DNA of 64,000 bases from Vitrella brassicaformis CCMP3155 (taxonomy: Eukaryota; Protista; Chromerida): the NCBI GenBank assembly GCA_001179505.1, contig CDMY01000240.1, positions 1 through 64,000 of the forward strand, given 5' to 3'. A program made the translations under genes and the position numbers. Below the pieces are notes generated by a model. It saw only the letters and a program-made list of their open reading frames with translations. It was not told the DNA's origin and searched no databases. Of this stretch, positions 38,609 to 63,221 are shown one piece after another. Position 1 is the first letter of the stretch. Each line of letters starts with the position of its first letter.

Positions 38609-38908
38609 NNNNNNNNNNNNNNNNNNNNNNNNNNNNNNNNNNNNNNNNNNNNNNNNNNNNNNNNNNNNNNNNNNNNNNNNNNNNNNNNNNNNNNNNNNNN
38701 NNNNNNNNNNNNNNNNNNNNNNNNNNNNNNNNNNNNNNNNNNNNNNNNNNNNNNNNNNNNNNNNNNNNNNNNNNNNNNNNNNNNNNNNNNNNNNNNNNNN
38801 NNNNNNNNNNNNNNNNNNNNNNNNNNNNNNNNNNNNNNNNNNNNNNNNNNNNNNNNNNNNNNNNNNNNNNNNNNNNNNNNNNNNNNNNNNNNNNNNNNNN
38901 NNNNNNNN
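38609..38908. other. Assembly gap (300 N)
   Basis: Run of n. Confidence 1.
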
Positions 38909-44650: not shown

Positions 44651-46153
44651 CTATCTGCCCACATCCCGCGACACAAACGAGTTGCCCTGCTGCTGCTGCT
44701 GCTGCTGTTGCTGCTGTAATGGGTCGAATCTGTTCTGCGCCCGTGTCATCAGCCGGCTCCCGCCCCTCATGGGCCCTGCTGCCGACGCCTGCTGCTGCTG
44801 CTGCTGCCCCTGCCCCTGCCCCTCGGTCGTTGGCTGCTGCACCGATCGCTGATGGTTCATGGGGCTGCCGACGCCCCTGTTGGTGGTCTGGTGGTCGTTG
44901 TGGTGGATCTGTGTGGACTCGGAGGCATAGCCATACTGATGTGTGTGGGTATGAGGGGGTGGGTGGCCGGGCTGCGTGTGCACTGGGTGGGAGAAGGGAT
45001 TGGGATTGGCGGGGAGGGGGTGTGGNNNNNNNNNNNNNNNNNNNNNNNNNNNNNNNNNNNNNNNNNNNNNNNNNNNNNNNNNNNNNNNNNNNNNNNNNNN
45101 NNNNNNNNNNNNNNNNNNNNNNNNNNNNNNNNNNNNNNNNNNNNNNNNNNNNNNNNNNNNNNNNNNNNNNNNNNNNNNNNNNNNNNNNNNNNNNNNNNNN
45201 NNNNNNNNNNNNNNNNNNNNNNNNNNNNNNNNNNNNNNNNNNNNNNNNNNNNNNNNNNNNNNNNNNNNNNNNNNNNNNNNNNNNNNNNNNNNNNNNNNNN
45301 NNNNNNNNNNNNNNNNNNNNNNNNNAGGGTGGCCGTTTCGTTCCTGTCGACGAAGGAGGGGGGCGGGGGCGGCCAGGCTGATGTGAGTGTCGACTGCGTG
45401 ACAGTGTCCGCCTCGCTCGCGCAGTGGCCACCGTCGGCATCGTCAGCCTGGCACCATAAAGGCAGAGAGAGAGGGAGGGAGGGAGGGAGGGAGAGAGATG
45501 TGCACAGAGTCATTCTATGTGTGTGGGATCTCCTCTCCTCAGTGCTGACTGACCTCGGCTGACTGCGGTGGGTACTTCCTGAGCTTGAACGAGACGCCGT
45601 CAGGTATGAGGAAGGCTCGCCGGTTGCTCTCGAGGTGGCGCTTGACGTGCCCCCAGGCCTTGTTGCTGAGGTGCTTGCCGCCGCCCACACGCTCCTTCTC
45701 CGCGTTGTGGTGCACCTCGATCGCTGTCACCATACCTGCACACACACACACACATATACACACACATACAGAGTCAGAGACGTCTCTCCCTCTCCCTCCC
45801 TCTGTGTGTCCCTCCCTCCCTGTTTGTGCGTACCAGAAAAGGGCGGCGAGTAGGGGACGGCTTCGATTCGGTTGCACTCCTTGAGCTCGGCCGTGGATGC
45901 GGCGGAGCTGCTGTCGAGCCAGTTGATGATGCGGCCCCAGGCGTCGCACGGCAGCTGGAAGTGCTTCCCGTTCTTCTCGGCGTGGACGTACTGACACACA
46001 CGCACAGGCGCACGATAGACACACACGAGGGATGGCCGTGACATCAGAAAGAGAGCAACGTGTACCCTGCCTGTGTGTGTGTGTGTGTCCATCTGTTCTC
46101 ACCTGTGTAGCTTGTGTCGTGGGAGGGGGTTGCTGCGCAGAGGACGGCAGCAT
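44651..46153 (-). CDS. Hypothetical Gln/Pro-rich protein, multi-exon, interrupted by the assembly gap
   Basis: Putative exons MLPSSAQQPPPTTQATQ|YVHAEKNGKHFQLPCDAWGRIINWLD..PPFS|GMVTAIEVHH..RKYPPQSAE|...polyQ...SRDVGR* with GT-AG borders. Confidence 0.45.
45026..45325. other. Assembly gap (300 N)
   Basis: Run of n. Confidence 1.
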
Positions 46154-49313: not shown

Positions 49314-49563
49314 GGGAGGAAGGGAGAAAGGGAGGGTGACGGTCGAGGACGTTGGGTGATCGATGTGGCAATCAGACGAGTCGAGGGCGATTGGCACCAT
49401 AATCCATTCATTCACTCACTAATGTGCAGTCAACAGAGTCCCATAACAACCAGTGAGACATCCGATGCGAAGCAGAGCCGACTCTTATCAAGAAACAGGC
49501 ACGTCACACCTTTGAAAGCTCTGGTCGGTCGACATGCCGGAACACCTATCAAGTCACCACCCC

Positions 49564-50594
49564 TCACTGCAGCACCGTCCCCCTTTCAATGACGTCACTC
49601 TCGAGACCGAATGGCCGAAGCGCACGGCGGGCGGCACCAACCGACACAGTGTAGCGGTCGGCGAGCGGATGAGATCCATCAGCTATAGGTGCCTCGGTCG
49701 TGAACAAATACTTCCCAACCACAGGTGAGCAGCGATGGTCTCGTTGGATCGCCAGCCGCTCACAATGACACTACGAAAAACAATCGGATTCGCATCATTC
49801 AGATTGCCCCCATCGTAGCGGAAGTCGGCGACGATGCCCAGACCCTCTGTGATGCTATCGGTCAGCAGCACACGGCCATAGCGAGGGTCACCGCGGCCGA
49901 TGTCTGCACGCAGCACCATCCTGCGGCCCATTCCCTCTCCATCGGGCCACCAGAGGAGTCGCCTGTGCAGCAGGAATGCCGAGAAGAAGGGAAAGAGATT
50001 GAGGCCGCAGCGGATGACGGGGTCGGTCCGCTTGTAGCCCTCAGCATAAGGATGCCCGCCCGGCAGCTCACCAAGAGACACCACACGAAACGGACCAGAA
50101 TTGCCGATCCAATAGAGTCCGTTGTCATCGGCTTGCTGCAGCGCCAGGCTGGTCCTTCTGTGTGTGAGCAGGTGGCCGAACAGCCGATAGATTGCCATCG
50201 CCAATGGCAGCTGGTGGAATGCCGTCCTGCTGGGAAGGTGGGCTGTCAGCCACTGAGCCGACAGCACCAGGGGCAGCCCATTGGCAGGCGTCAGCCGATA
50301 GATGGCGGCCAGCCGGATGAACCGCCCCATCCCAGGCCACTCGTTGCTGCCCTGCTCCAGCACATAGGCCGCCCGCAGCACACAGCTGAATGGGAGAGGG
50401 GCGGTGCGGTCGATGTCGATGAGGCCGGTGAGAGAGTGGCGGGCGAGGGAGCCGACGATGCGCTCCACCAGCAGAGCGGCGGTCACCAGAGCCGCCTTCA
50501 CCCGGCAGGTCGCTCGGACACAGACCGCCTCATGGACGAGAAGGGACGGCAGAATGCGCCTCCGCCACAGGTCGTCGGGCACCAAATCAGACAT
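49564..50594 (-). pseudogene. Family A, subtype A2, with a 10-nt deletion near 49705 that frameshifts the tail
   Basis: gggaagt|atttgttcacg versus gggaagtggctacatctatctgttcacg in the 62162 copy. Confidence 0.8.
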
Positions 50595-51219
50595 CGTCAC
50601 GACTCAGTCAGTGAGCGCATGACAACAACCTTCCTGACAGCACACAGGACACACACATGGAAGCAGAAATAGAGTGCATTTCGAATCGGCTTGCGTGGTT
50701 CTTCTCTCACCCTTCACAAGTTGACCACGTGCAGTGCAGGAGGCACAACGACGCCGGCCTGTGTGATCATGAAGCCTCTGTCTGCTCACTCGGGAAGATC
50801 AAGATGAACAAGGCAGACGGCGACTCAGACCTGCCACAATCACACACAGAGACCACACAGGCTGTCATTGCTGATGTCATAAGGCCCTCCTGGGTGCCCT
50901 CGCTCACCTCAATGCGTCAGATCAGCGCCGGTCAGAGAGATGACGGCGACATCTGTGTTGATCGATGTCATCACAGCAGCTCTTTGATCACCTCCCAGGC
51001 ACTCCACGCCGCCCGTGCAAAAAGGAAAGGCAAACGATCTGCACGCCAAGCTCGCAAAGCACGGTTTCGGACCCTCTCAAGGGACTCATCGGAGGTGAGA
51101 GGGCAGCAACAGAGACAGATGAAGCATCGGAGTGCCGCAAACCGATCCCTCTTCGTGTGTCTGTTGCGTGGCTGCAGATCTGTTGTGTGATTCCTCGCTC
51201 AGGCCTCAGGACACTCCCG

Positions 51220-52356
51220 ATGCAGCCCACTGGTGCAGCCCACCCCTCGTCCCGTCCCCCCAGCCCTGCCCTCTTCCAGCCCGCCGACCTCTTTGACCTG
51301 TCATTGCCCATCAGCAAGATGGCCGCCATGGCCATGGCGACTGACGATGCCAAACGAGCCGCTCTCCGCTCGCAGCTCGCCACCCGCACTCGGCAACAGG
51401 AGCTGCTGGGCCACACTGCGGAGACCGTCAACAGCACCCTGCTCAACGCCGTCCAGCAGCACATCCACAAGGCCCTCAGTCAAAGAGGTGTGGCGGACGT
51501 CTTGGCCTTCGACATTGGCGGTAATGTGGAGGCCGGCTTGAGGGTGGTCTATGTGCTGGAGCGGGGCAATGGCGAGGAGTGGCGGGCGATGGGGCGGCTC
51601 CCTCGGCTGGCCTTCATCTACCGGCTGACGCCTGCTGATGCGACTCGGCCTCTCCGTCTGTCGGCCGACGCACTGCCCACAGCAACGGCCTTCCACCAGC
51701 TGCCACTCACCATGGCCATCTACAAAATCATGGGCCGTCAGCTTACGCTCAGATGGCCCACACTGGAGCTGCAGCAAGTCGACGACAACGGACTCTATCG
51801 GATCGGCAATTCTGGTCCATTTCGTGTGGTGCCTTTGGGTGAGCTGCCGGGCGGCCATCGCTATGCTGAGGGCTACAAGCGGACCGATCCCGTCATCCGA
51901 TGGGGCCCCTATCTCTATCGCTCATTCTCGGCATTCCTGATGGACGCGCTGCTCTGGTGGTGGGACCGTGAAGAGGGGGTGGGTCAGAGGATGGTGCTGT
52001 CGGCCAACATCGGCTGCCGCGACCCTCGCTATCACCGACTGTTGAGGACCGACAACATCACAGAGGATCAGGGCATCGCTATCGATTATCGCAATGATGC
52101 GGGCAATCTCAATGTTGCTGATTCGATTGACTTTCGGAATGTGATTGTGAGCGGCTGCCGCGAAAACGAGACCGTCGCTGCGCACCTGTGGGTGGCGTGG
52201 GGCGGAATCAGGCTGTACACGACCGAGCCATCTGCTGCCCATCGACTTCAGCCGCTCGCTGTCCGCTTCCCCACTTCATTGCCCTTGTGGCGCAGTGTGC
52301 TGCTGGGATGCGGGCTTGACAACGATGTCATCAACAGGGGGCGGGTGGTGCCATGA
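51220..52356 (+). CDS. Family A, subtype A1 (MQPTGAA variant), intact
   Basis: MQPTGAAHPSSRPPSPALFQPADLFDLSLPISKMAAMAMATDDAKRAALRSQ...VADVLAFDIGG...VINRGRVVP*. Confidence 0.8.
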   Translation: MQPTGAAHPSSRPPSPALFQPADLFDLSLPISKMAAMAMATDDAKRAALRSQLATRTRQQELLGHTAETVNSTLLNAVQQHIHKALSQRGVADVLAFDIGGNVEAGLRVVYVLERGNGEEWRAMGRLPRLAFIYRLTPADATRPLRLSADALPTATAFHQLPLTMAIYKIMGRQLTLRWPTLELQQVDDNGLYRIGNSGPFRVVPLGELPGGHRYAEGYKRTDPVIRWGPYLYRSFSAFLMDALLWWWDREEGVGQRMVLSANIGCRDPRYHRLLRTDNITEDQGIAIDYRNDAGNLNVADSIDFRNVIVSGCRENETVAAHLWVAWGGIRLYTTEPSAAHRLQPLAVRFPTSLPLWRSVLLGCGLDNDVINRGRVVP

Positions 52357-52941
52357 GGGGTGCCGGCCGGCTGGTGCCTGATTTGGCTGGTGCGTTTAAT
52401 GAGTTGGGGGGGCCGCGGGGGGAGGGGCTAATGGCTGCAGGGTTGTCCACATGTGGGTGTGTCTGTGTCCGGTGGCTTGACGCATTGCCTGACGTGAGTG
52501 CTCCGTATGTTAGCGAGACTGACTGATGACAAATTTCCCTTAATCTCCGTATTTTATGTACACAGCCGTCCGTCCATCCGAACAGACCACAGGGCACACA
52601 CACAGACAGACAGAGACAGACAGACGGACGGACGGACAGGTAATGTTCAAAGCTCTGCTCCCCGCCCGTCAAGCTGTCGTCAGTCGTGACGATTTCACAT
52701 GAGCTTGACAGTATAGAAGCAGGCCTGTCTTTGGGCATGTGTGTGGTGATTGTGTGTGCTGATTATGTCTTTCTTTGCAGTGTGCGAAGCATTGAATGGA
52801 ACAAGGGTGGAAGGATGAATGGAAGGGCATCGCAGTGAGTGCACCAGGTGCCCGTCACACACTTCATTCTCTCATTGTCAGTCAGGCCATGCAGAGAGAG
52901 AGAGAACACTGGACACTCATCCTTTACATGTAGCTGTCTGT

Positions 52942-55230
52942 CTATCGGCTCTCAGTTCCCCTCTGCTTCATCGGGTCAATCTCAACCACCTGATCCTGCA
53001 CACACACACACATTGAACAAACAGCCGGCCAAAGAAGTGGCCCGCCCGTCATCCATCGATCCAATCCAACGAACGGACCTCTTATTATCCACCTAGTGTG
53101 TACCTGATTAGGGTTGACGATACTGGCAGTGAAGTCAAGATACCACTCCCACAGCAGCACCGCCAGCAGCAACTGAACCACACCTCACTCAACACACCGC
53201 ACCCTTCTGTCTGTCTATGGTGTGGTGGTGCCGTCCCCTGCCCACCGGCGTGACGGTCTGTTGCAGCTTGGCGTCATACGCCTGTGTGCCGGGGACGGCC
53301 ATCAAGAACCGAATGCCGTTGTACACCTGTTGATCGATCAACGGATGGATGGATGGATGCGCACAGGGCTGCGCTGCGTGTGTGGGTCACTAAGAGAGTG
53401 CCTCCCTCACTTCAGTGAGTGCTTCATTCACTGACTGACCGCGGCGAAGGTGCATCCTGAGGCGAGCAGGAACTGCAGGCGCTTTGGGAAGAACCTCTGG
53501 CAGCTCCACAGCTGCAGCTTCAGACCGAAATCACGCGCCTCAACCCTGCAAACAAACAAAGGGAGTTGTTAACACACAACACAGCCATTCGTATCACGAG
53601 GTCATCCATGGCCATGGTGGTGCTAGAGAGGGTCGTGTGCATGTGTGTGTGTATGTCTATGTACCTGACTTTCTGAGGCCAGTACTGGAGGTCAGTCGGC
53701 TGGTTTCGAGACTCCCGCTCCCTCAGCCACGTCAGCTGAGCCAAAGACACACAGACAGACAGACACGCGAAGATTCTCCACATTTGTGGGGCTGGTCTGG
53801 AATTTTTCTGGTTGGTTGGTTGGCTACCAGGTGTGGAGGGGCCACCTCATCCAGCTGCTGAGTCTGCCCCACACACACACACACACACACACGACCCAGG
53901 ACCCAGCCATGGGTGTTCCGATCACCCATGGCAGCATTGCATTCACACCGACATACGCACCTGTTGAATGAGTTCCCTGATGATGTCCCGCTGCTCCTTG
54001 GTGAACTGCAGCAGCGCCCGGCGCACATACGCACGTTTGCGAGACCTGGCGTCCCTCCCTCCAGACACCTGCTGGCATGAACCAACCAACAGCCACACAC
54101 ACACATCACGGACGGCACCTCAGCCCACCAGGCCACACACATACCTGAGCGTCGCTCGCCGTCTTCGTAGCTGCTGCGCCATCCCCCAGTGGCTGCACCA
54201 TCCGCCACGCCTCTTCGCTGCTGCTGCTGCTGCTGCTGCTGCTGACAGGTGTGTGTGGCGGTGAAGGTGCCGTTGGCTGTATGTTGAGGTCGTGCATCTG
54301 TGTCTGCAGCTTCCGCAGCCTCTGCTGCAGTGTCGTCAGCTGGGCGTAGTCCTTCTGAAGCGACTCCACCACCTCAGGATACCGAGAGAAACCCGACAGC
54401 TGCACAACACATAGAAATGTGGCTGCCTGCTTTTCGCCATTGATGGCTGGATACACTCACTCACCGCTTCCACAGGCAGAGAGGACACATTTGGCGCGAC
54501 AGCCGACGGCCTCGACACTTCCCTTAGGCCCCCCGCACCGGTCGCCACCTCCTGCCGCTGCTTGACCTTGATGTTTCTGAAGTAGCGGTCGAATATCTGC
54601 CGCTTCCTGAGGGCGATCTCCGACTTGAGCGACGAGATCTGCTGCTCACGGGGGTCGGTGAACGGCCGGGAAGGGGCGGCTGGGGGAGAGGGGGAGGGCT
54701 CGAGCAGGCGGCTCAGAGAGGGTGGCAGAGCTGGCTCTGAGAGAGAGAGAGAGAAAGGGAGCCATTGAATGGTGTATGCTTTGTGTGTTGGGGGCATACC
54801 GCTGGTGTCCGTCTTGACGGGTGGCATGTTGGGGTCATCGAGCTCGGCCAGGACCTCCTCAAACACAGCTGACACAACACAGCACAACACAACGAGCGAA
54901 TGAACACATGGAATGGGACGCTGGCTCTCCACCCTCCCACCACGTCTGCTCACCGAGATCCACACCCTCTTCCAGTGCAAGCCCGCTCGACTGTTTCAGC
55001 AGCAGCAGCAACTCATCCCGCAGGCCGCCGCGGCCTCCTGGCGCCACTGTGGCAGCAGCTGACGATGAGGGCCTGGTCTCCGTCGCCGGCTGAGCTGACA
55101 TCCTCGGAACCGTCGGTAGAGAGAACAGAGGCCGGTGGGATGGGGAGGGAGGGGGGCTGACGATGAATGCATTTGACGCCGCGATGCACTGCCACACCGC
55201 AAGGATGAAGAGCGTCGTCGGTAGGGGCAT
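52942..55230 (-). CDS. Hypothetical plastid-targeted protein, multi-exon, coiled coil plus C-terminal hydrophobic segments
   Basis: MPLPTTLFILAVWQCIAASNAF plus an S/P/R-rich transit region; exons such as EQQISSLKSEIALRKRQIF, LQKDYAQLTTLQQRLRKLQ, VVQLLLAVLLWEWYLDF and DQVVEIDPMKQRGTESR*. Confidence 0.6.
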
Positions 55231-55459
55231 ACAGATGGGATCAGTCATCGGCACTCATTCACTCGTCCAGATCTCGCAAAGCCGGAAGCTCACGCTGCAG
55301 CAGTTGTCGGCTGCCCACTGATTCTTATATGTTTGACCCTCATCTGCCTTCGCTTTTATCGCGTCCCATTCAAGCTCGCCATTTTGTTCGAGCGCGCAGC
55401 ACGAAACCACGCGCTGACGAGGGTGAATCCCGTAGGAGGAGGACCCCAGCAGCACAAGG

Positions 55460-57934
55460 ATGGCGCCTCGGACCAGCACTGGCCGCAAGCACTCGTCACA
55501 CGCCGACGGTCCACCCTCCCCAAAGCGGCGGTCCTCGTCCTTCTGCCTCCTGCGCGCCATCCCGCTCGGCAGGCAAAGGACGGCCACCCACGACGACCTG
55601 GTGCACCACCCATCCCTCAGTGGCAAGCCCGTCGTGTGGTCCGCCCTCCCCGACGAGATAGAGGAGTTGGTGTTGATCAGCCTGGGTGCGAGGGACATCT
55701 GCATCCTCCAGGCGGCTTCTGGTGGGCTGAGGGCGAGGGGCAAGAGGGTGCTGGACAAGAGGGTCGCGGCGCTGAGTTTGCGTGAGGCTGGGGCGGACGT
55801 CAAGGCCGTCCACTTCTGGGAGACGCGGCAGCCGCGTGCGGGGCCGAACGGCTCGCTCAGCGCCAATGGACTCATCGCCGTCTGTCAAAAGGCCAACGGC
55901 AGGTCAGCAAGCTACCTAGCATCCATTGTGCTCATGTGTGCCACTGGTTTCTGGGGTTCGGTTGGCTAATTGCAGGGTGGTTGTGTGTGGTCACACGCCT
56001 TCCCTGCCCCAATGGCTGGACCCGATACTCGACACGGCCATCGCGCCCCCCCTCCCCCGCGCGCACAGACGCCCATCGGCCTCCCACCATCACGACAGCG
56101 ACGTGCAGATGCCCATCGGCTGGCCGAGAGACATCACGGCGTGTCTGCCGCCGAGCAGGGAGATGGCGCACCTCGGCACATGGACCTGCGTCACGCGGGA
56201 CGGCCTGGTGTACCTCTGCTTCCCCCCTCTGCTGCTGCCGCTCTCCCTCCCCCTCTTCAATCTCCCGCCATCAGCCGGCAGGAGCGGGGCGTTGGCGACG
56301 CCTGGCGCCATACCGGCCCCGCTGCCCAGCAAGGCCCCTGCCAAGAGCAAGACCCCCCACAAGTGCAGGCGGCACTGCCCCTGCCGAGCGGCGGGTATGG
56401 CCTCGCTGTACCCCTCTCGGTCAACGCCCACCGTCTCGCAGCAGCAGCAGGAGAGTGGCATGGACGACAGGGGCGACAGTGACAGGGCCCCCGCCACCCC
56501 CCCTGCACGGACTGGGCAGGTGCAGGTGGGGTTTGGTGCGATGATGCAGCATCATCGGGTGGCGCAGCTGCCGCGGCTGCCGTGTCTGCGGAGCATGGTC
56601 CGCGTCGTCGCGAGCACCTGCGACCACATGGCCTTCGTCACTGGCCAAGGTACGCTACGCCGCACCTACGGTTGTCCGTCCCTCCATCACTTCACATGCA
56701 TAATACGTGTGTGTCACCTCAATTGCTGCATGGTACACAGGTGAGTTGTGGCTACTTGGCGACCAGCGACATCAGCAGTTCTCTCCCTCTGCACCATCCA
56801 GCTGGTCGGCCCCCATGATCCCCGAGCGCGTGCACGGCCTCGACAAGCAGCGCGTCACACACGTGGCCGTGGGCGGCGGCAGGGCGACCGGCAGCGGCCC
56901 CCCATCCCCCTCATCCACCCCCACCCACTTCACGCTGGCCCTGACGGACACAGGCCACGTGTATGGCGTCGGCTGCGACAGCAGGGGCCAGCTGGGGAGG
57001 GGCGACGTCAGGCAAAGGCAGAGGAAGGGCGTCGGCGAGTTCCTCGAGGCCACACGAATCGAACCCAAGCTCTTCAACAATGAGAAGGTGGGTCAGCTTG
57101 GCCAAGGTCACCACTGATTCTTCTCGAGTGTGTGCACTTGTATGTTTGTGTGTCGATGTGGTTTAGGTGGTTGCCTTGGCAGCCGGTGCGGCGCATGCAG
57201 CCGCCCTGACGGCCACCGGTGCGGCCTTCACCTGGGGCTCTGGCGACAGAGGCCAGCTCGGACACCGATTTCCCGTGGACGAGTACGAGCCCGTCCCCAC
57301 GCGCATCGACTACGTCAAGGACAGCCGCGCCACCTCACCCCCCTCACACACCGGCGGCCCTGCCAACCCCCCGAGCACGCCCCCCTCCCCTTCGCTCATC
57401 GAGGCGTCACGACGAATGGTCTTCTCGCGGGTGTCGTGCGGCGCCTGCCACACCCTGCTGACCACTGACGACGGCAAGGTCTACGGCTGCGGGGCCAATG
57501 ATGGCGCTCTGGGGCTGGGTGACCCGTATCAGCGATACCTTCCGACACTCGTCGCACGATTTCTCGCCAAAGGGGTCAGTGACTTGGCACACAACAGACA
57601 GACGGACGGACGGACGGACAGACAGGAGAATTGTCATGTCTCTGTGTGCTTGTCTCAGGTGCGTGTGGTGGAAAGTGCGGGGGGCCAGGCGTTCAGTTTG
57701 TTCCTAGACAGCACCGGGGGCCTCTGGTGGACGGGCGAGGCGCCCTGGGGCTTCCACAGCCGCCGGGCCACGCACAAGCCAGCACCCCCCACGTCGCCAT
57801 CCATCAAGGGCACGCTGCTGCGGCTGGTGGGCGAGCACCACCCCTGTGGCCGCCCCTCCCACGCCCCGTCGTCGCTGGTGCCCGTCAGGCTGCCCACGCC
57901 GTCTGTCGTCCATGCCACTGCGGCCTCAGGCTGA
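55460..57934 (+). CDS. F-box and RCC1-repeat protein
   Basis: WSALPDEIEELVLISLGARDICILQAAS (F-box); RCC1 repeats FTLALTDTGHVYGVGCDSRGQLG, VALAAGAAHAAALTATGAAFTWGSGDRGQLG, VSCGACHTLLTTDDGKVYGCGANDGALGLG and SAGGQAFSLFLDSTGGLWWTG. Confidence 0.88.
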
Positions 57935-59814
57935 CAAGAATAGTCGTTCTCTGCCGAACGAAGCGAACCAATCGGTCGCTGCGTAGCACTCGCGACATCT
58001 GTGCCGTGTGTGACGTGACAGCTGGGACATTGCCGTTTTTCTGTCGTCCTCATGGCTTGATTGGCTTGATTGGCTTGTCCGCCTGCTTGCTTGGATGGTG
58101 TCTCTTACTGTCGTCTCTCCATCTCTCCGTCTCTCTTTCTGTGCCCGTGTTGTGCGTGTGTTGTGTTGTGATTCGTTTCGTTGACTGGGCTGCCATTTTT
58201 CTGTCCCAGCTCGTCTGTACGCGGATGGATGGATGGATGCACTGATTGGGGGAAACATGGCTCGGGTCCTCTCTGTAGCGAGCTGGGCTAATCGAGACAA
58301 AAGTGGGGCGGGGAGGATGGCGTGATTAATGCTGCTGCTGCGTCCCTGCCTGCCCGTCTGGCTCGTTGCCGGCACGGGTTTTCCGCTATTGGTGATGCTG
58401 ACTGCTGCCCTGCCATGTATATTATCTATTACCTACTGTCCGTTGGGTGGGTCGGGTCTGATGTTCACACGTGAGAGAGAATTGTGACAAGCCTCTTGAC
58501 GATTGGCTGACTGCTGCATTCACGATTACGGTCCTGCGGGCGGGCGGTGGGTGTCTGGTGTTCTCTCGGTGCTTTTGTGCTTCCCTCAGACGGTTGTCGT
58601 GCCTGTGACTGACAGCAGGCAGGGAAGGCGTCTGTCGGTGGCGTCTGAGCCATGAGAGGACAACGGACCCCTAGGGACACGGGAGAGAGAGGGAAAGCCT
58701 CCTCGTGACGCTCTATCTGACTGACTGTGTGTGGGCACTGTGAATGTTCACCACCCCACCCCCACTCACTCACCTCTCTGTGTCGATCGATGTATGGCAT
58801 GGCTGTTGTACAGTAAGTATATACGGGGGACACCACAACGGAAAGGACGAGGGGTTCCATTCGTGCTGCTTCGTGGCTATCGAGCAAATATGCCTGCGAG
58901 CATGACTTCTCCATGATGTGTCACAATACAAGGCATCGAAGTGAGTCGAGAGCAGCCACAGCGCTCGACTCACACCGATGTCGAGGGACGCGACACATCA
59001 AGAGAGACGTGCCTGCCTGTCTGTTGGTCGTCGTCACTATCCCAAACTGATCTCAACTGGCTGGGCATTATGGGATTTTTCACTTGCGGCTGAGTACGTG
59101 TGTGCGTGTGATTGCGACTCAGAGAGGGAGTGCACTGTGTGTCCGTGTTGTGTGTGCCCAAAGGGCAGATTGCATGGCTGCATACCTTGATTGTGTTGTG
59201 GGAGTGCATGATGTGGATGGGTGGCTATGGACGAACGCGTGGATGAGGGATTCAATCGTAAATTTCGTTTCTCCAGCCCTGATCACGGACCGTCTGGGGG
59301 TACGGCGAACTCACAGGCACGACCCACATGATTGATGCCAGCTATAGACGAATTCGGCTCTCATGTATACAGTGCGGCTGTGGGCGTGGTCTGACTGTCC
59401 ACACCATGAGAATGTCAGCACCAACAATCACCATAGACATGCCCAAAGACAAGACTGTCACACGCCTGTTGTTGTACTGTCAAGCTTATCTGAGAGTATC
59501 ACGAGTGACGACAGCCTGACGGGCAGGGAGGAGGGAGAGCTTTAGAACATCAGCTGTGCCTGTCCGCCTGTCTGTCTGTCTGTCTGTCTGTCTCTGTCTG
59601 TGTGTCCTGTGGTCTGTTCGGATGGACGGACGCCTGTGTACACAAACACGGAGAGTAAGGAAAATTTGTTCTAAGCACTCTCGCTGACATACAGAGTACT
59701 CACGTCAGCGTCAGTCACCGGACACACAAACACACACATGGACACCCATGCAGCCATTGGCCCTGCCCTAACTCATTAAAGGCACCAACCATACCAGGCG
59801 CCAGCCGGCACCCC

Positions 59815-60306
59815 TCATCCCAACACTCTCCCCTATCGATGACGGCACTTTCGAGACCGAATGGCCACAGCAGACGGCGAGCGGCACCAACCGACACAGA
59901 GTAGCGGTCGGCGAGCGGATGAGGCCGATCGGCAGCAGATGGCTCGGTCGTGTACAGCTCGACGAGGCCATCTCCCACCCGCAGATGGGCAGCGACGGTC
60001 TCGTTGAGTCGGAATCCGATCAGAATGACATCACGATGGTCTTCTATATTGCCCCGATCGTAGCGGTAGTCGACAGCGATGCCCTGATCCTCTGGGATGT
60101 TGTCTGTTCTCAGCAGACGGCCGTAGCGAGCGTCGCCACGGCCGATGTCGGCCCACAGCACCATCTTCTGCTCCACTCCCTCTCCATCCGACCACCATAA
60201 GAGCACCCTGTCCAGCAGGAAGGCCGAGAAGGAGCGATTGAGCCATTCGCCCTGTCGGATGGCGGGGTCGGCCCGCTTATATCCCTCAGCGTAGGGATGG
60301 CCGCCC
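59815..60306 (-). pseudogene. Orphan C-terminal half of a family A gene, in tandem behind 60402-61538
   Basis: Begins abruptly at GGHPYAEGYKRADPAIR and runs to FGLESAVIDRG; its variable loops differ from the upstream full copy. Confidence 0.85.
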
Positions 60307-60401
60307 GTCCCCCCATTCATCGCACCTACTTCAAATCACTCAGTCCCCTTCCACCCGCCCTCTAACACCGCCACCAACACCCAATCGCCAGCCAGCACTC
60401 C

Positions 60402-61538
60402 TCACCCCGCGCCCATCACCCTCCCCCTGTCGATGACGACACTCTCGAGATCGAATCGCCGCAGCACAGCACACCACAGGGGCATTGACACGGGGAAGCG
60501 GTCGGAGAGCGGATGAGTCCGATCAGCAGCAGATGGCTCGGTCGTCCACACAGTGATGTAGCCATTTCCGACCCTCAGATGGGTAGCGACGGTCTCGCCG
60601 AATCGCCAGCCGCTCACAATCACACGACGACAGTCCCCCGCATCAGCAAAATTCAGACTGCCCCGGTCGTAGCGGTAGCCGACAGCGATGCCCTGATCCT
60701 CCGTGATGTTGTCTGTCCTCAGCAGGCGGCCATAGCGTGGGTCGTCACGGCCGATGTGTGCTTCAAGCACCAGCCTGTGATCCACTCCCTCTTCATCCGA
60801 CCACCAGAAGAGCAGCGAGTCAATCAGGAACGCCGAGAATGAGACGAAGAGATTGCCGCCGCATCGGATGACGGGGTCGGTCCGCTTGTAGCCTTCGGCA
60901 TACGGATGGCCGCCCGGCAGCTCACCCAATGACACCACACGAAAGGTCCACACATTGCCAATCCGATAGGCCCCATTGTCGGCTGGCTGCAGCGCCAGGC
61001 TGTGTGTGTTGTATGTGAGCAGGTGGCCGATGATTTTGTAGATGGCCATAGTCAGGGGCAGCTGGTGGAAGGCCGTTGATGCGGGCAGTGCGTCGGCCGA
61101 TAAACGGAGAGGCCGAGTCGCATTGAGAGGGGTGAGCCGGTAGATGAAGGCCAGCCAAAAGAACCGCCCCATCGCCCGCCACTCCTCGCCACTGCCCCGC
61201 TCCAGCACATAGACCGCCTTCAAGCCGGCCTCCACATCACCGCCAATGTCGAAGGCCAACACGTCCGCCAGGCCTCTTTGACTGAGGGCCTTGTCGATGT
61301 GCTGCTGGACGGCGTTGAGCAGGGTGCTGTTGACGGTCTCCGCAGTGTGGCCCAGCAGCTCCTGTTGCCGAGTGCGGGTGGCGAGCTGCGAGCGGAGAGC
61401 GGCTCGTCTGGCATAGTCAGTCGCCATGGCCATGGCGGCCATCTTGCTGATGGGCAATGACAGGTCAAAGAGGTCGGCGGGCTGGAAGAGGGCAGGGCCG
61501 GCGGGACGGGACGAGGGCGCCGCACCAGTGGGCTGCAT
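60402..61538 (-). CDS. Family A, subtype A1 (MQPTGAA variant), intact (378 aa)
   Basis: N-terminus nearly identical to 51220-52356; the C-terminal loops differ. Confidence 0.8.
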   Translation of the reverse strand: MQPTGAAPSSRPAGPALFQPADLFDLSLPISKMAAMAMATDYARRAALRSQLATRTRQQELLGHTAETVNSTLLNAVQQHIDKALSQRGLADVLAFDIGGDVEAGLKAVYVLERGSGEEWRAMGRFFWLAFIYRLTPLNATRPLRLSADALPASTAFHQLPLTMAIYKIIGHLLTYNTHSLALQPADNGAYRIGNVWTFRVVSLGELPGGHPYAEGYKRTDPVIRCGGNLFVSFSAFLIDSLLFWWSDEEGVDHRLVLEAHIGRDDPRYGRLLRTDNITEDQGIAVGYRYDRGSLNFADAGDCRRVIVSGWRFGETVATHLRVGNGYITVWTTEPSAADRTHPLSDRFPVSMPLWCAVLRRFDLESVVIDRGRVMGAG

Positions 61539-62161
61539 CGGGAGTGTCCTGAGGTCTCAGCGTGGCGTCACACAAGAGATCTGCAGCCACACACAACAGA
61601 CACACGGAGAGGGATCGGTTTGCAGCATTTCGATGCTTCATCTGTCTCTCTCGCTGCCCTCTCACCTCCAATGAGTGTCTTGAGAGCGAAAACGTCCAAT
61701 CCACTGATGGGGCTTTTTGCGAGCTTGCTTTGCAGATCTCTCCCCCTTTTTTGCGATGACAGGGCGGCGTGGAGTGCCTGGGAGGTGATCAAAGAGCCGC
61801 TGTGATGACATCGATCACCACAGATGTGGCGGTCATCTCTCTGACGGACGCTGATCTGACGCATTGAGGTGAGAGAGGGCACCCAAGAGGGTCTGATGAC
61901 ATCAGCAATGACAGCCTGTGTGGTCTCTGTGTGTGGTTGGGCAGGACTGAGTCGCCTTCTGCCTTGTTTATCTTGATCTTTGCGAGTGAGCAGACAGGCC
62001 GGCGTCGTTGTGCCTCGTGCACTGCACGTGGTCAACTTATGAAGGGTGAGAGAAGAACCACGCAAGCCGATTCAAAATGCACTCGCTGTTTGCTTCCTTG
62101 TGTGTGTTCTGTGTGCTCTCTGGCAGATGGTTGCCATGTGCTGACTGAGTGAGTCGTGGCG

Positions 62162-63221
62162 ATGTCTGATTTGGTGCCCGACGACCTGTGGCGGAGGCGC
62201 ATTCTGCCGTCCCTTCTCGTCCATGAGGCGGTCTGTGTCCGAGCGACCTGCCGGCCGAAGGCGGCTCTGGTGACCGCCGCTCTGCTGGTGGAGCGCATCG
62301 ACGGCTCCCTCGCCCGCCACTCCCTCACCGGCCTCATCGACATCGACCGCACCGCCCCTCTCCCATTCACCTATGTGCTGCGGGCGGCCTATGTGCTGGA
62401 GCAGGGCAGCAACGAGTGGCCTGGGATGCGGCGGTTCATCCGGCTGGCCGCCATCTATCGGCTGACGCCTGCCAATGGGCTGCCCCTGGTGCTGTCGGCT
62501 CAGTGGCTGACAGCCCACCTTCCCAGCAGGACGGCATTCCATCAGCTGCCATGGGCGATGGCCATCTACAAGATCATCGGCAATCTATCGGCTGTTCGGC
62601 CACCGGCTCACAGACGCAGGGAACAGCCTGGCGCTGCAGCAAATCGACGACAACGGACGCTATCGGATCGCCGGCGGTTGGCCGTTTCGTGTGGTGCCGT
62701 TGGGTGAGCTGCCGGGCGGCCATGGCTATGCTGAGGGCTACAAGCGGACCGACCCCGTCATCCGCTGGCCGGCCCTCCTCTTCCCCTCATTCTCGACATT
62801 CCTGCTGGAGAGGGTACTCGTCAGGTGGTGCTATGGTAAAGGAGCGGGCCAGAGGAAGGTGCTGCGTGCAGTCATCGGCCGTGATGATGCTCGGTATGGC
62901 CGTGTGCTGCTGACCGATAGCATCACAGAGGGTCTGGGCATCGTCGCCGACTTCCGCTACGATGGGGGCAATCTGAATGATGCGAATCCGATTGTTTTTC
63001 GTAGTGTCATTGTGAGCGGCTGGCGACCCAACGAGACCATCGCTGCTCACCTGTGGTTGGGAAGTGGCTACATCTATCTGTTCACGACCGAGGCACCCGT
63101 GGCTGATCGGTCTCAGCCGCTCGCCGACCGCTTCCCCGTGTCGGTTGGCGCCGCCCGCCGTCTGCTGCGGCCATTAGGTCTCGAGAGTGACGTCATCGAC
63201 AGGGGGACCGTGGTGGGGTGA
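62162..63221 (+). pseudogene. Family A, subtype A2, frameshifted by a 19-nt insertion at 62563-62581
   Basis: atggc[catctacaagatcatcggc]aatctatcgg versus atggcaatctatcgg in sibling A2 copies. Confidence 0.85.

Follow-up and report, generated by a model that had tools for sequence, protein, structure and literature searches.

The window analysed here, positions 1 to 64,000 of the forward strand of contig CDMY01000240.1 of Vitrella brassicaformis CCMP3155 (hereafter C240), carries about a dozen copies or fragments of a family of genes with a single open reading frame (ORF), which encode proteins of ~345–380 amino acids (aa) and are referred to as the A family. Vitrella is a free-living photosynthetic relative of the apicomplexan parasites. 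The members are assigned to types by the N-terminus of the encoded protein, A1 starting with MQPTGAA... or MASS.QPPP... and A2 with MSD.VPD.LW... or MASS.P.E.W.... Toward the end of the window, a minus-strand A2 gene (c49) stands head to head with a plus-strand A1 gene (c51), and this pair is mirrored by a minus-strand A1 gene (c60) and a plus-strand A2 gene (c62), forming an inverted duplication with arms at 49.55–52.75 kb and 59.43–63.24 kb (Table 1). The homology of the arms runs on into their downstream flanks, and the arm-versus-arm identity is uneven along the inverted repeat. The two A2 copies, lying in inverted orientation ~13 kb apart, share a nearly identical patch beside strongly diverged sequence, and gene conversion is probably the best explanation of this patch.

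A near-identical patch in two diverged A2 copies

A six-frame search of the genome assembly (72.7 Mb, 1064 contigs) yielded at least 114 matches to the A family from 330 first-look candidates, and the DNA-level analyses of the family were conducted on 64 copies projected onto c49 coordinates. Over the whole gene, c49 and c62 share 88% DNA identity and are reciprocal best matches in the genome. This average conceals a patchwork, in which the coding sequence is 96–100% identical over its 5′ 440 nt, the following 280 nt are 75–88% identical except for one motif conserved family-wide, and the sequence from the patch to the end falls again to ~75–88%. The initial annotation of the window had pointed to ~190 nt of near-identity between the two copies next to a very different upstream segment, and this observation held: the peptides it quoted are present in the ORFs of both A2 copies, and the patch is 99% identical over 193 nt, as against 73–78% in the 100–120 nt immediately upstream. 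Searched against the whole genome, the 183-nt core of the patch matched its partner at 99% and every other copy at no more than 80–81%, while the 120 nt upstream of the patch matched the partner at 78% and the best other copy at 82% (c49) or 80% (c62). Counted by segment, the two copies differ at 62 of 283 nt upstream, 2 of 192 nt within the tract, and 38 of ~155 nt downstream. The proportion of synonymous sites that differ (pS) is 0.021 in the patch; for the two segments upstream of it, pS is 0.25 and 0.19, about the same as the corresponding proportion at nonsynonymous sites (pN).

The length of the patch was evaluated by a run test that uses only family-polymorphic sites and takes as its null the maximum over all pairs after permutation of the site order. 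With 30 A2 copies, the two sequences agree at 111 consecutive polymorphic sites across the patch, and no pair had a run longer than 58 in 300 permutations; with all 64 copies, the corresponding values are 126 sites and, in 200 permutations, 61. The patch is real, specific to the pair, beyond chance, and without explanation by constraint. It has the properties that characterize interlocus conversion, namely a block of near-identity with diverged flanks that is longer than expected by chance, and the pattern holds at synonymous sites.

Both copies that carry the patch are broken genes. The ORF of c49 stops early because 10 nt are absent between 49711 and 49710, and the frame of c62 is shifted by a separate 19-nt A1-like insert at 62560–62578. 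The initial annotation had proposed that variable loops are shuffled between paralogues, and this part of the proposal could not be maintained: in the structural model described below, the tract is predicted to encode approximately residues 239–302, which form strands of the C-terminal sheet, that is, a core beta-sheet and not loops. As c49 and c62 are both frameshifted, the pair does not demonstrate any functional shuffling.

Table 1. Coordinates of the genes, spacers, and segments of the inverted duplication in the window.
Feature	Position	Strand	Remarks
c49, A2 copy	49552..50600	-	broken; ORF 49683-50600 (305 aa)
Putative conversion tract in c49	49688..49880	-	193 nt; relative to c62, 2 transitions (49748, 49707) and one 10-bp indel
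Divergent segment adjoining the tract	49881..50003	-	73-78% to c62; genome-wide best 82%
49-nt motif	50079..50127	-	nearest to A1 neighbour c51, 3 mismatches; mostly also in the A2 copy on C350
A2 5′ core (c49 positions 240-560)	50164..50484	-	97-100% in most A2 copies; dS 0.084
Head-to-head spacer, first pair	50601..51219	.	83% to the spacer of the other arm; 70-85%, partial only, to other pairs
c51, A1 copy	51220..52356	+	intact frame, 378 aa
Partial 3′ copy	59811..60335	-	residues ~199-378; absent from the other arm; ~72-78% to sampled copies
c60, A1 copy	60402..61538	-	intact, 378 aa; relative to c51, 5′ half 91%, 3′ half 76%
Head-to-head spacer, second pair	61539..62155	.	
c62, A2 copy	62156..63221	+	broken; ORFs 62156-62707 and 62691-63221
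Putative conversion tract in c62	62895..63097	+	203 nt, with 10 nt (63065-63074) absent from c49

History of the c49 and c62 pair

As a whole, the data quite likely reflect a pair of old inverted sister paralogues that received a recent short conversion tract, in a family whose members exchange sequence. c49 and c62 would be old sisters that each belong to one arm of the duplicated and inverted A2/A1 pair, and the identity of these arms would first have dropped to ~75–83% in the spacer and the 3′ halves. Interlocus gene conversion, in the form of one short and non-reciprocal repair event (~190–200 bp), would then have copied the sequence of one arm onto the other and reset the segment to identity, and two substitutions and a 10-bp deletion would have been gained since. 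We infer conversion during repair from the pattern, and a direction of transfer or a functional use of the exchange could only be inferred likewise; the genome-wide searches returned no third copy that would settle the polarity. Phylogenetic analysis placed c49 and c62 as sisters across the 3′ half (support 97) and as a clade within the tract (support 98). For the divergent flanks of the two copies, searches of the whole assembly found no donor above 82% identity, which indicates old divergence instead of freshly imported tracts; the proposal that the divergent patches had themselves been imported from other copies was thus not supported.

Several results weigh against this history. The approximately unbiased (AU) test rejected the sisterhood of c49 and c62 in no flank or segment (p 0.68–0.74), i.e., there is no topological incongruence. 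A single tree fitting all windows had been named in the initial annotation as the outcome that would speak against exchange, and in topology one tree does fit this pair; tract and flanks contrast in depth instead, with a difference of an order of magnitude (10- to 20-fold). In similarity, the tract (2/193 nt) does not significantly exceed the 5′ half (12/437 nt), and a recent duplication followed by later divergence is therefore still compatible with the data on depth alone. The permutation of sites in the run test does not keep local rate differences, and the copies sampled as DNA represent only 64 of the at least 114 (330 candidates). In the pairwise homoplasy index (PHI) test of the 3′ half (65 copies), z was −0.8 at w = 100 (109/500 permutations) and smaller windows gave p 0–0.06, with an incompatibility that did not fall with distance, a flat relation due to either saturation or very frequent exchange.

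If the duplication was recent, c49 and c62 would be duplicates diverged by ~1–3%, the intervening segments would have been overwritten later through conversion with other paralogues as donors, and the identical patch would be a remnant. Such a history accommodates the similar divergence of the tract and the 5′ half as well as the sister relationship throughout, and cross-copy tracts do occur in the family. However, the divergent flanks of either copy are without a close match in the assembly, the non-coding spacer is only 83% identical between the arms, and the 5′ similarity is family-wide and not specific to the pair. On these three grounds the old duplication is preferred; the overwriting of recent duplicates is unlikely and keeps what probability it has because the assembly may miss copies.

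It is very unlikely that the patch is an artefact of short-read assembly, in which the repeats of the family had been joined into a chimera or partly collapsed. The assembly is fragmented, the window contains two 300-nt runs of N that mark assembly gaps (38609–38908 and 45026–45325), and the family's transcript contigs appear as chimeras when compared with the genome. Neither gap is near the tract, however, which has unique, diverged sequence of the same contig to its left and right and carries two substitutions and an indel of its own; many copies on other contigs have comparable tracts. A history without any exchange, in which local differences in constraint or mutation had placed purifying selection on the patch and diversifying selection or targeted hypermutation beside it, would suit the high pN/pS (0.7–0.8) across the 3′ half of the family but is highly improbable, as synonymous divergence differs ~10-fold between the patch and its flank, other copies reach at most 81–88% in the patch region, one of the most variable of the family, both genes are frameshifted, and the flank mismatches between c49 and c62 (26 transitions, 36 transversions) show no mutational bias, which speaks against targeted hypermutation.

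Gene conversion between clustered paralogues of multigene families is a well-known, textbook mechanism. The palindromes of Y chromosomes maintain >99.9% identity over tens of kb. Arm-to-arm conversion is reported for the ampliconic gene families of primate Y chromosomes (PMC4772468, PMC5056753) and likewise concerns inverted paralogues on one chromosome, and the putative resetting of a tract to near-identity within older, diverged arms is a further point of resemblance. Unlike those palindromes, c49 and c62 are homogenised over ~190 bp only, in arms that are otherwise 75–83% identical.

Exchange between subtypes in the A family

The A family combines a uniform 5′ part with a diverse 3′ part. 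Positions ~240–560 of c49 are 97–100% identical in most A2 copies, including those on other contigs, and the 5′ near-identity of c49 and c62 is consequently not a property of this pair. The mean pairwise identity among 31 A2-like copies is 0.88–0.93 in the 5′ core and 0.6–0.75 in the 3′ half, and the median synonymous divergence (dS) of 20 A2 copies rises from 0.084 in the 5′ core to 0.42 in the 3′ segments. The A1 copies display a milder gradient, from 0.84–0.93 falling to 0.68–0.80. The non-coding spacer between c49 and c51 is less conserved than the A2 5′ core next to it; the core is an island of homogeneity, and no larger homogenised block explains it. The copies cluster on a few contigs, and frameshifts or stops were found in ~45% of the 64 sampled copies. 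The family does not have the features of a transposable element, as no Pfam domain was found, the copies are clustered, and the 5′ untranslated region (UTR) is spliced; terminal repeats were not looked for.

The two parts of the gene have different histories with respect to subtype. On the 5′ tree (positions 330–560, 64 copies), the A1/A2 label changes twice, compared with 21.7 changes for shuffled labels, whereas on the 3′ tree (625 nt, 64 copies) it changes 21 times, compared with 22.0 for shuffled labels. Forcing the A2 copies to be monophyletic in the 3′ half was rejected by the AU test (delta lnL 264, p 1.3e-64). The 3′ tree is resolved in part, with support ≥90 in the Shimodaira–Hasegawa-like approximate likelihood-ratio test (SH-aLRT) on 22 of 62 branches, and 7 of its 15 small well-supported clades mix the subtypes. 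Identical tracts (52–132 nt) above the global 95% permutation threshold were detected in 12 of 2016 pairs. Seven of these pairs join an A1 with an A2 copy, and seven lie on the same contig, compared with 248 of the 2016 pairs overall (odds ratio 10; as the pairs are not independent, the p-value is indicative at most).

Junctions between the modules were also observed. Three A2 copies (C350 at ~103.2–103.9 kb, L013, and L034) contain a 111-nt insert exactly at the boundary of the 5′ and 3′ modules, the first 50–70 nt of which match A1 copies at 91–98%. To judge by its sequence, this insert is an out-of-register A2 × A1 junction. In the C350 copy it preserves the reading frame, and the annotated product of that gene has 377 aa. 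Recombination between the subtypes is well supported at the level of the family.

The initial annotation had also described a motif common only to c49 and its A1 neighbour, which would have implied a transfer across subtypes. The A1 neighbour (51775–51840) is indeed the closest copy to this 49-nt motif, with three mismatches, but the A2 copy on C350 (~103.2 kb) has most of it, with six mismatches and its last 35 nt identical to the A1 neighbour, and the c49–c51 pair fell below the global threshold of the tract test. The C350 copy is the sister of c49 and c62 in the 3′ tree (support 96), so their common ancestor probably had the motif already. As the motif is neither exclusive nor significant, it was rejected as an instance of specific cross-subtype exchange.

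Taken at the family level, the claim that short tracts are exchanged between paralogues stands, given the significant c49–c62 tract, the 12 significant pairs, and the incompatible 5′ and 3′ histories; the exchange is real, and it mainly involves whole modules and short tracts, not loops. Recombination probably acts at two scales. The 5′ modules, of about four N-terminal types, would be kept near-uniform within each type, and the diverse 3′ modules would be re-assorted between types at a conserved junction; in addition, short identical tracts of 50–130 nt would pass between copies that are otherwise 70–78% identical. In CEACAM1 paralogues (PMC7042247) and the TLR1 family (PMC3125219), one part of the gene is reported to be similarly homogenised while another diverges. 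The A family differs from both in that its homogenised A2 5′ core shows stronger conservation than the spacer beside it and in that its variable halves are re-assorted between subtypes.

Encoded protein, distribution, and other features of the window

Searches of the family proteins against Pfam, against the PDB by sequence, and against the PDB with Foldseek returned no match, and a shape search of the ESM Atlas gave a template modelling (TM) score of at most 0.31. The AlphaFold model based on a 35-sequence family alignment has a predicted local distance difference test (pLDDT) score of 90.8 and a predicted TM (pTM) score of 0.88, and is composed of helices in its N-terminal part and of an alpha/beta domain toward the C-terminus; the predicted protein looks soluble and globular. 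When residues 1–145 were modelled as a single domain, the pLDDT was 46. In an exhaustive structural comparison, 7 of the top 32 entries were Skp1-bound F-box proteins. Beta-TrCP1 (two entries), FBXO31, Cdc4, and Fbs2 align to residues 1–84 or slightly less (Z 4.6–5.3), and FBXO3 (Z 5.4, residues 1–338) and SLY1 (Z 4.6, residues 4–122) align over longer ranges, all at Z values below 8, which can reflect a common arrangement. The C-terminal domain obtained generic alpha/beta matches only (Z 5–6).

At the sequence level, no Pfam match to an F-box profile (PF00646 or PF12937) was found in three proteins of the window or in 35 family members, and a genome scan with PF12937 at E values up to 10 listed no match on the contigs with sampled A2 copies. 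One distant relative has a sub-threshold PF12937 hit (17.4 bits), and UniRef labels two distant relatives as 'F-box domain-containing'. The model suggests that the N-terminus is possibly F-box-like. In several Vitrella gene models (P0192, P0156, P0189, P0196, and P0033), the family domain is associated with BTB_2, ubiquitin, cyclin C-terminal, HMG-box, or CBM_25 domains, the BTB fusion and the ubiquitin fusion each occurring in one gene model. The associations are mixed, and they reflect either genuine fusions or, as may hold for some, gene models merged in error.

The F-box receptor families of plants and nematodes join a conserved adaptor end to a fast-evolving target-binding end and comprise hundreds of lineage-specific copies. 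The A family resembles them in its conserved N-terminal and variable C-terminal modules and in its lineage-specific, clustered copies, many of which are pseudogenes. It differs in that the members tested are without a Pfam F-box match, in that the C-terminal fold corresponds to no known F-box partner domain, and in its pN/pS of 0.7–0.8, at which positive selection is not demonstrated. VSG, var, vlsE, and pilS are systems of antigenic variation in which mosaic genes are built from pseudogene reservoirs. The A family is like them in its many broken or partial copies, its segmental exchange, and the conserved ends around variable cores. It differs in that there is no sign of an expression site (no such structure was looked for), of exposure at the surface, or of a host whose defences would have to be evaded; Vitrella is a photosynthetic alga, and the A proteins are predicted to be soluble and globular. 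It is rather doubtful that the A family is a Vitrella-specific set of more than 100 cullin-RING ubiquitin-ligase adaptors, F-box-like in the A2 forms and with other types of N-terminus besides, whose target-binding half gains diversity through recombination of modules and conversion of short tracts from pseudogenes and partial cassettes, comparable to a recognition repertoire of innate immunity. If the N-terminus is truly an F-box, the family would represent rapidly diversifying ubiquitin-ligase receptors among those photosynthetic organisms that are most closely related to Apicomplexa and would bear on the origin of recombining multigene families in the apicomplexan-related lineage.

What is new here is the substrate of the exchange, an undescribed family of more than 100 copies whose named matches are all from a single chromerid. 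Its fold is predicted with confidence but has no match, and, as described above, the family combines few uniform 5′ modules with many re-assorted 3′ modules and a large share of broken copies. Every named match to the family comes from V. brassicaformis, and a profile search of 1.84 billion representatives returned 150 clusters, with all 10 of the clusters that were looked up originating from Vitrella. Members were also found on a few short contigs from metagenomes and transcriptomes. Among them, the metagenome contig k147_490098 (ENA ERZ893784; L043:280-1395) encodes an A1-type member with 81% DNA identity to the copy on C500, which places the A family in another strain or in an environmental relative as well.

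Transcript records (mmetsp sources) exist for several members. Two transcripts of JGI sample 3300017148 (L041:1-1799 and L042:1-1569) have 5′ UTR exons that match C782 or C387 at 99–100% with intron-like gaps, whereas their coding parts match best on a different locus at 92–94%; in one example, the UTR exons are 100% identical to C782 and the coding sequence is closest to C387 (94%). These contigs are either chimeric transcript assemblies or derived from copies missing from the genome assembly. They were considered as alleles of a second strain and rejected because they map as chimeras, which makes them unusable as independent alleles. Gene models, transcript assemblies, and trees of the A family should be read with the caution that they are mosaics.

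Within the second arm, a partial 3′ copy sits directly behind the intact c60. Its identity to the sampled copies (Table 1) marks it as old and rules it out as a recent donor. Long antisense ORFs (~300 aa) cross the A genes, e.g., at 49725–50672 on the plus strand, but such ORFs are expected in coding sequence with 60% GC and give no sign of a second gene. Between the arms, ORFs on the plus strand at 56700–57950 contain repeated G.GD.GQLG-type motifs that resemble RCC1 repeats and probably belong to an unrelated multi-exon gene.

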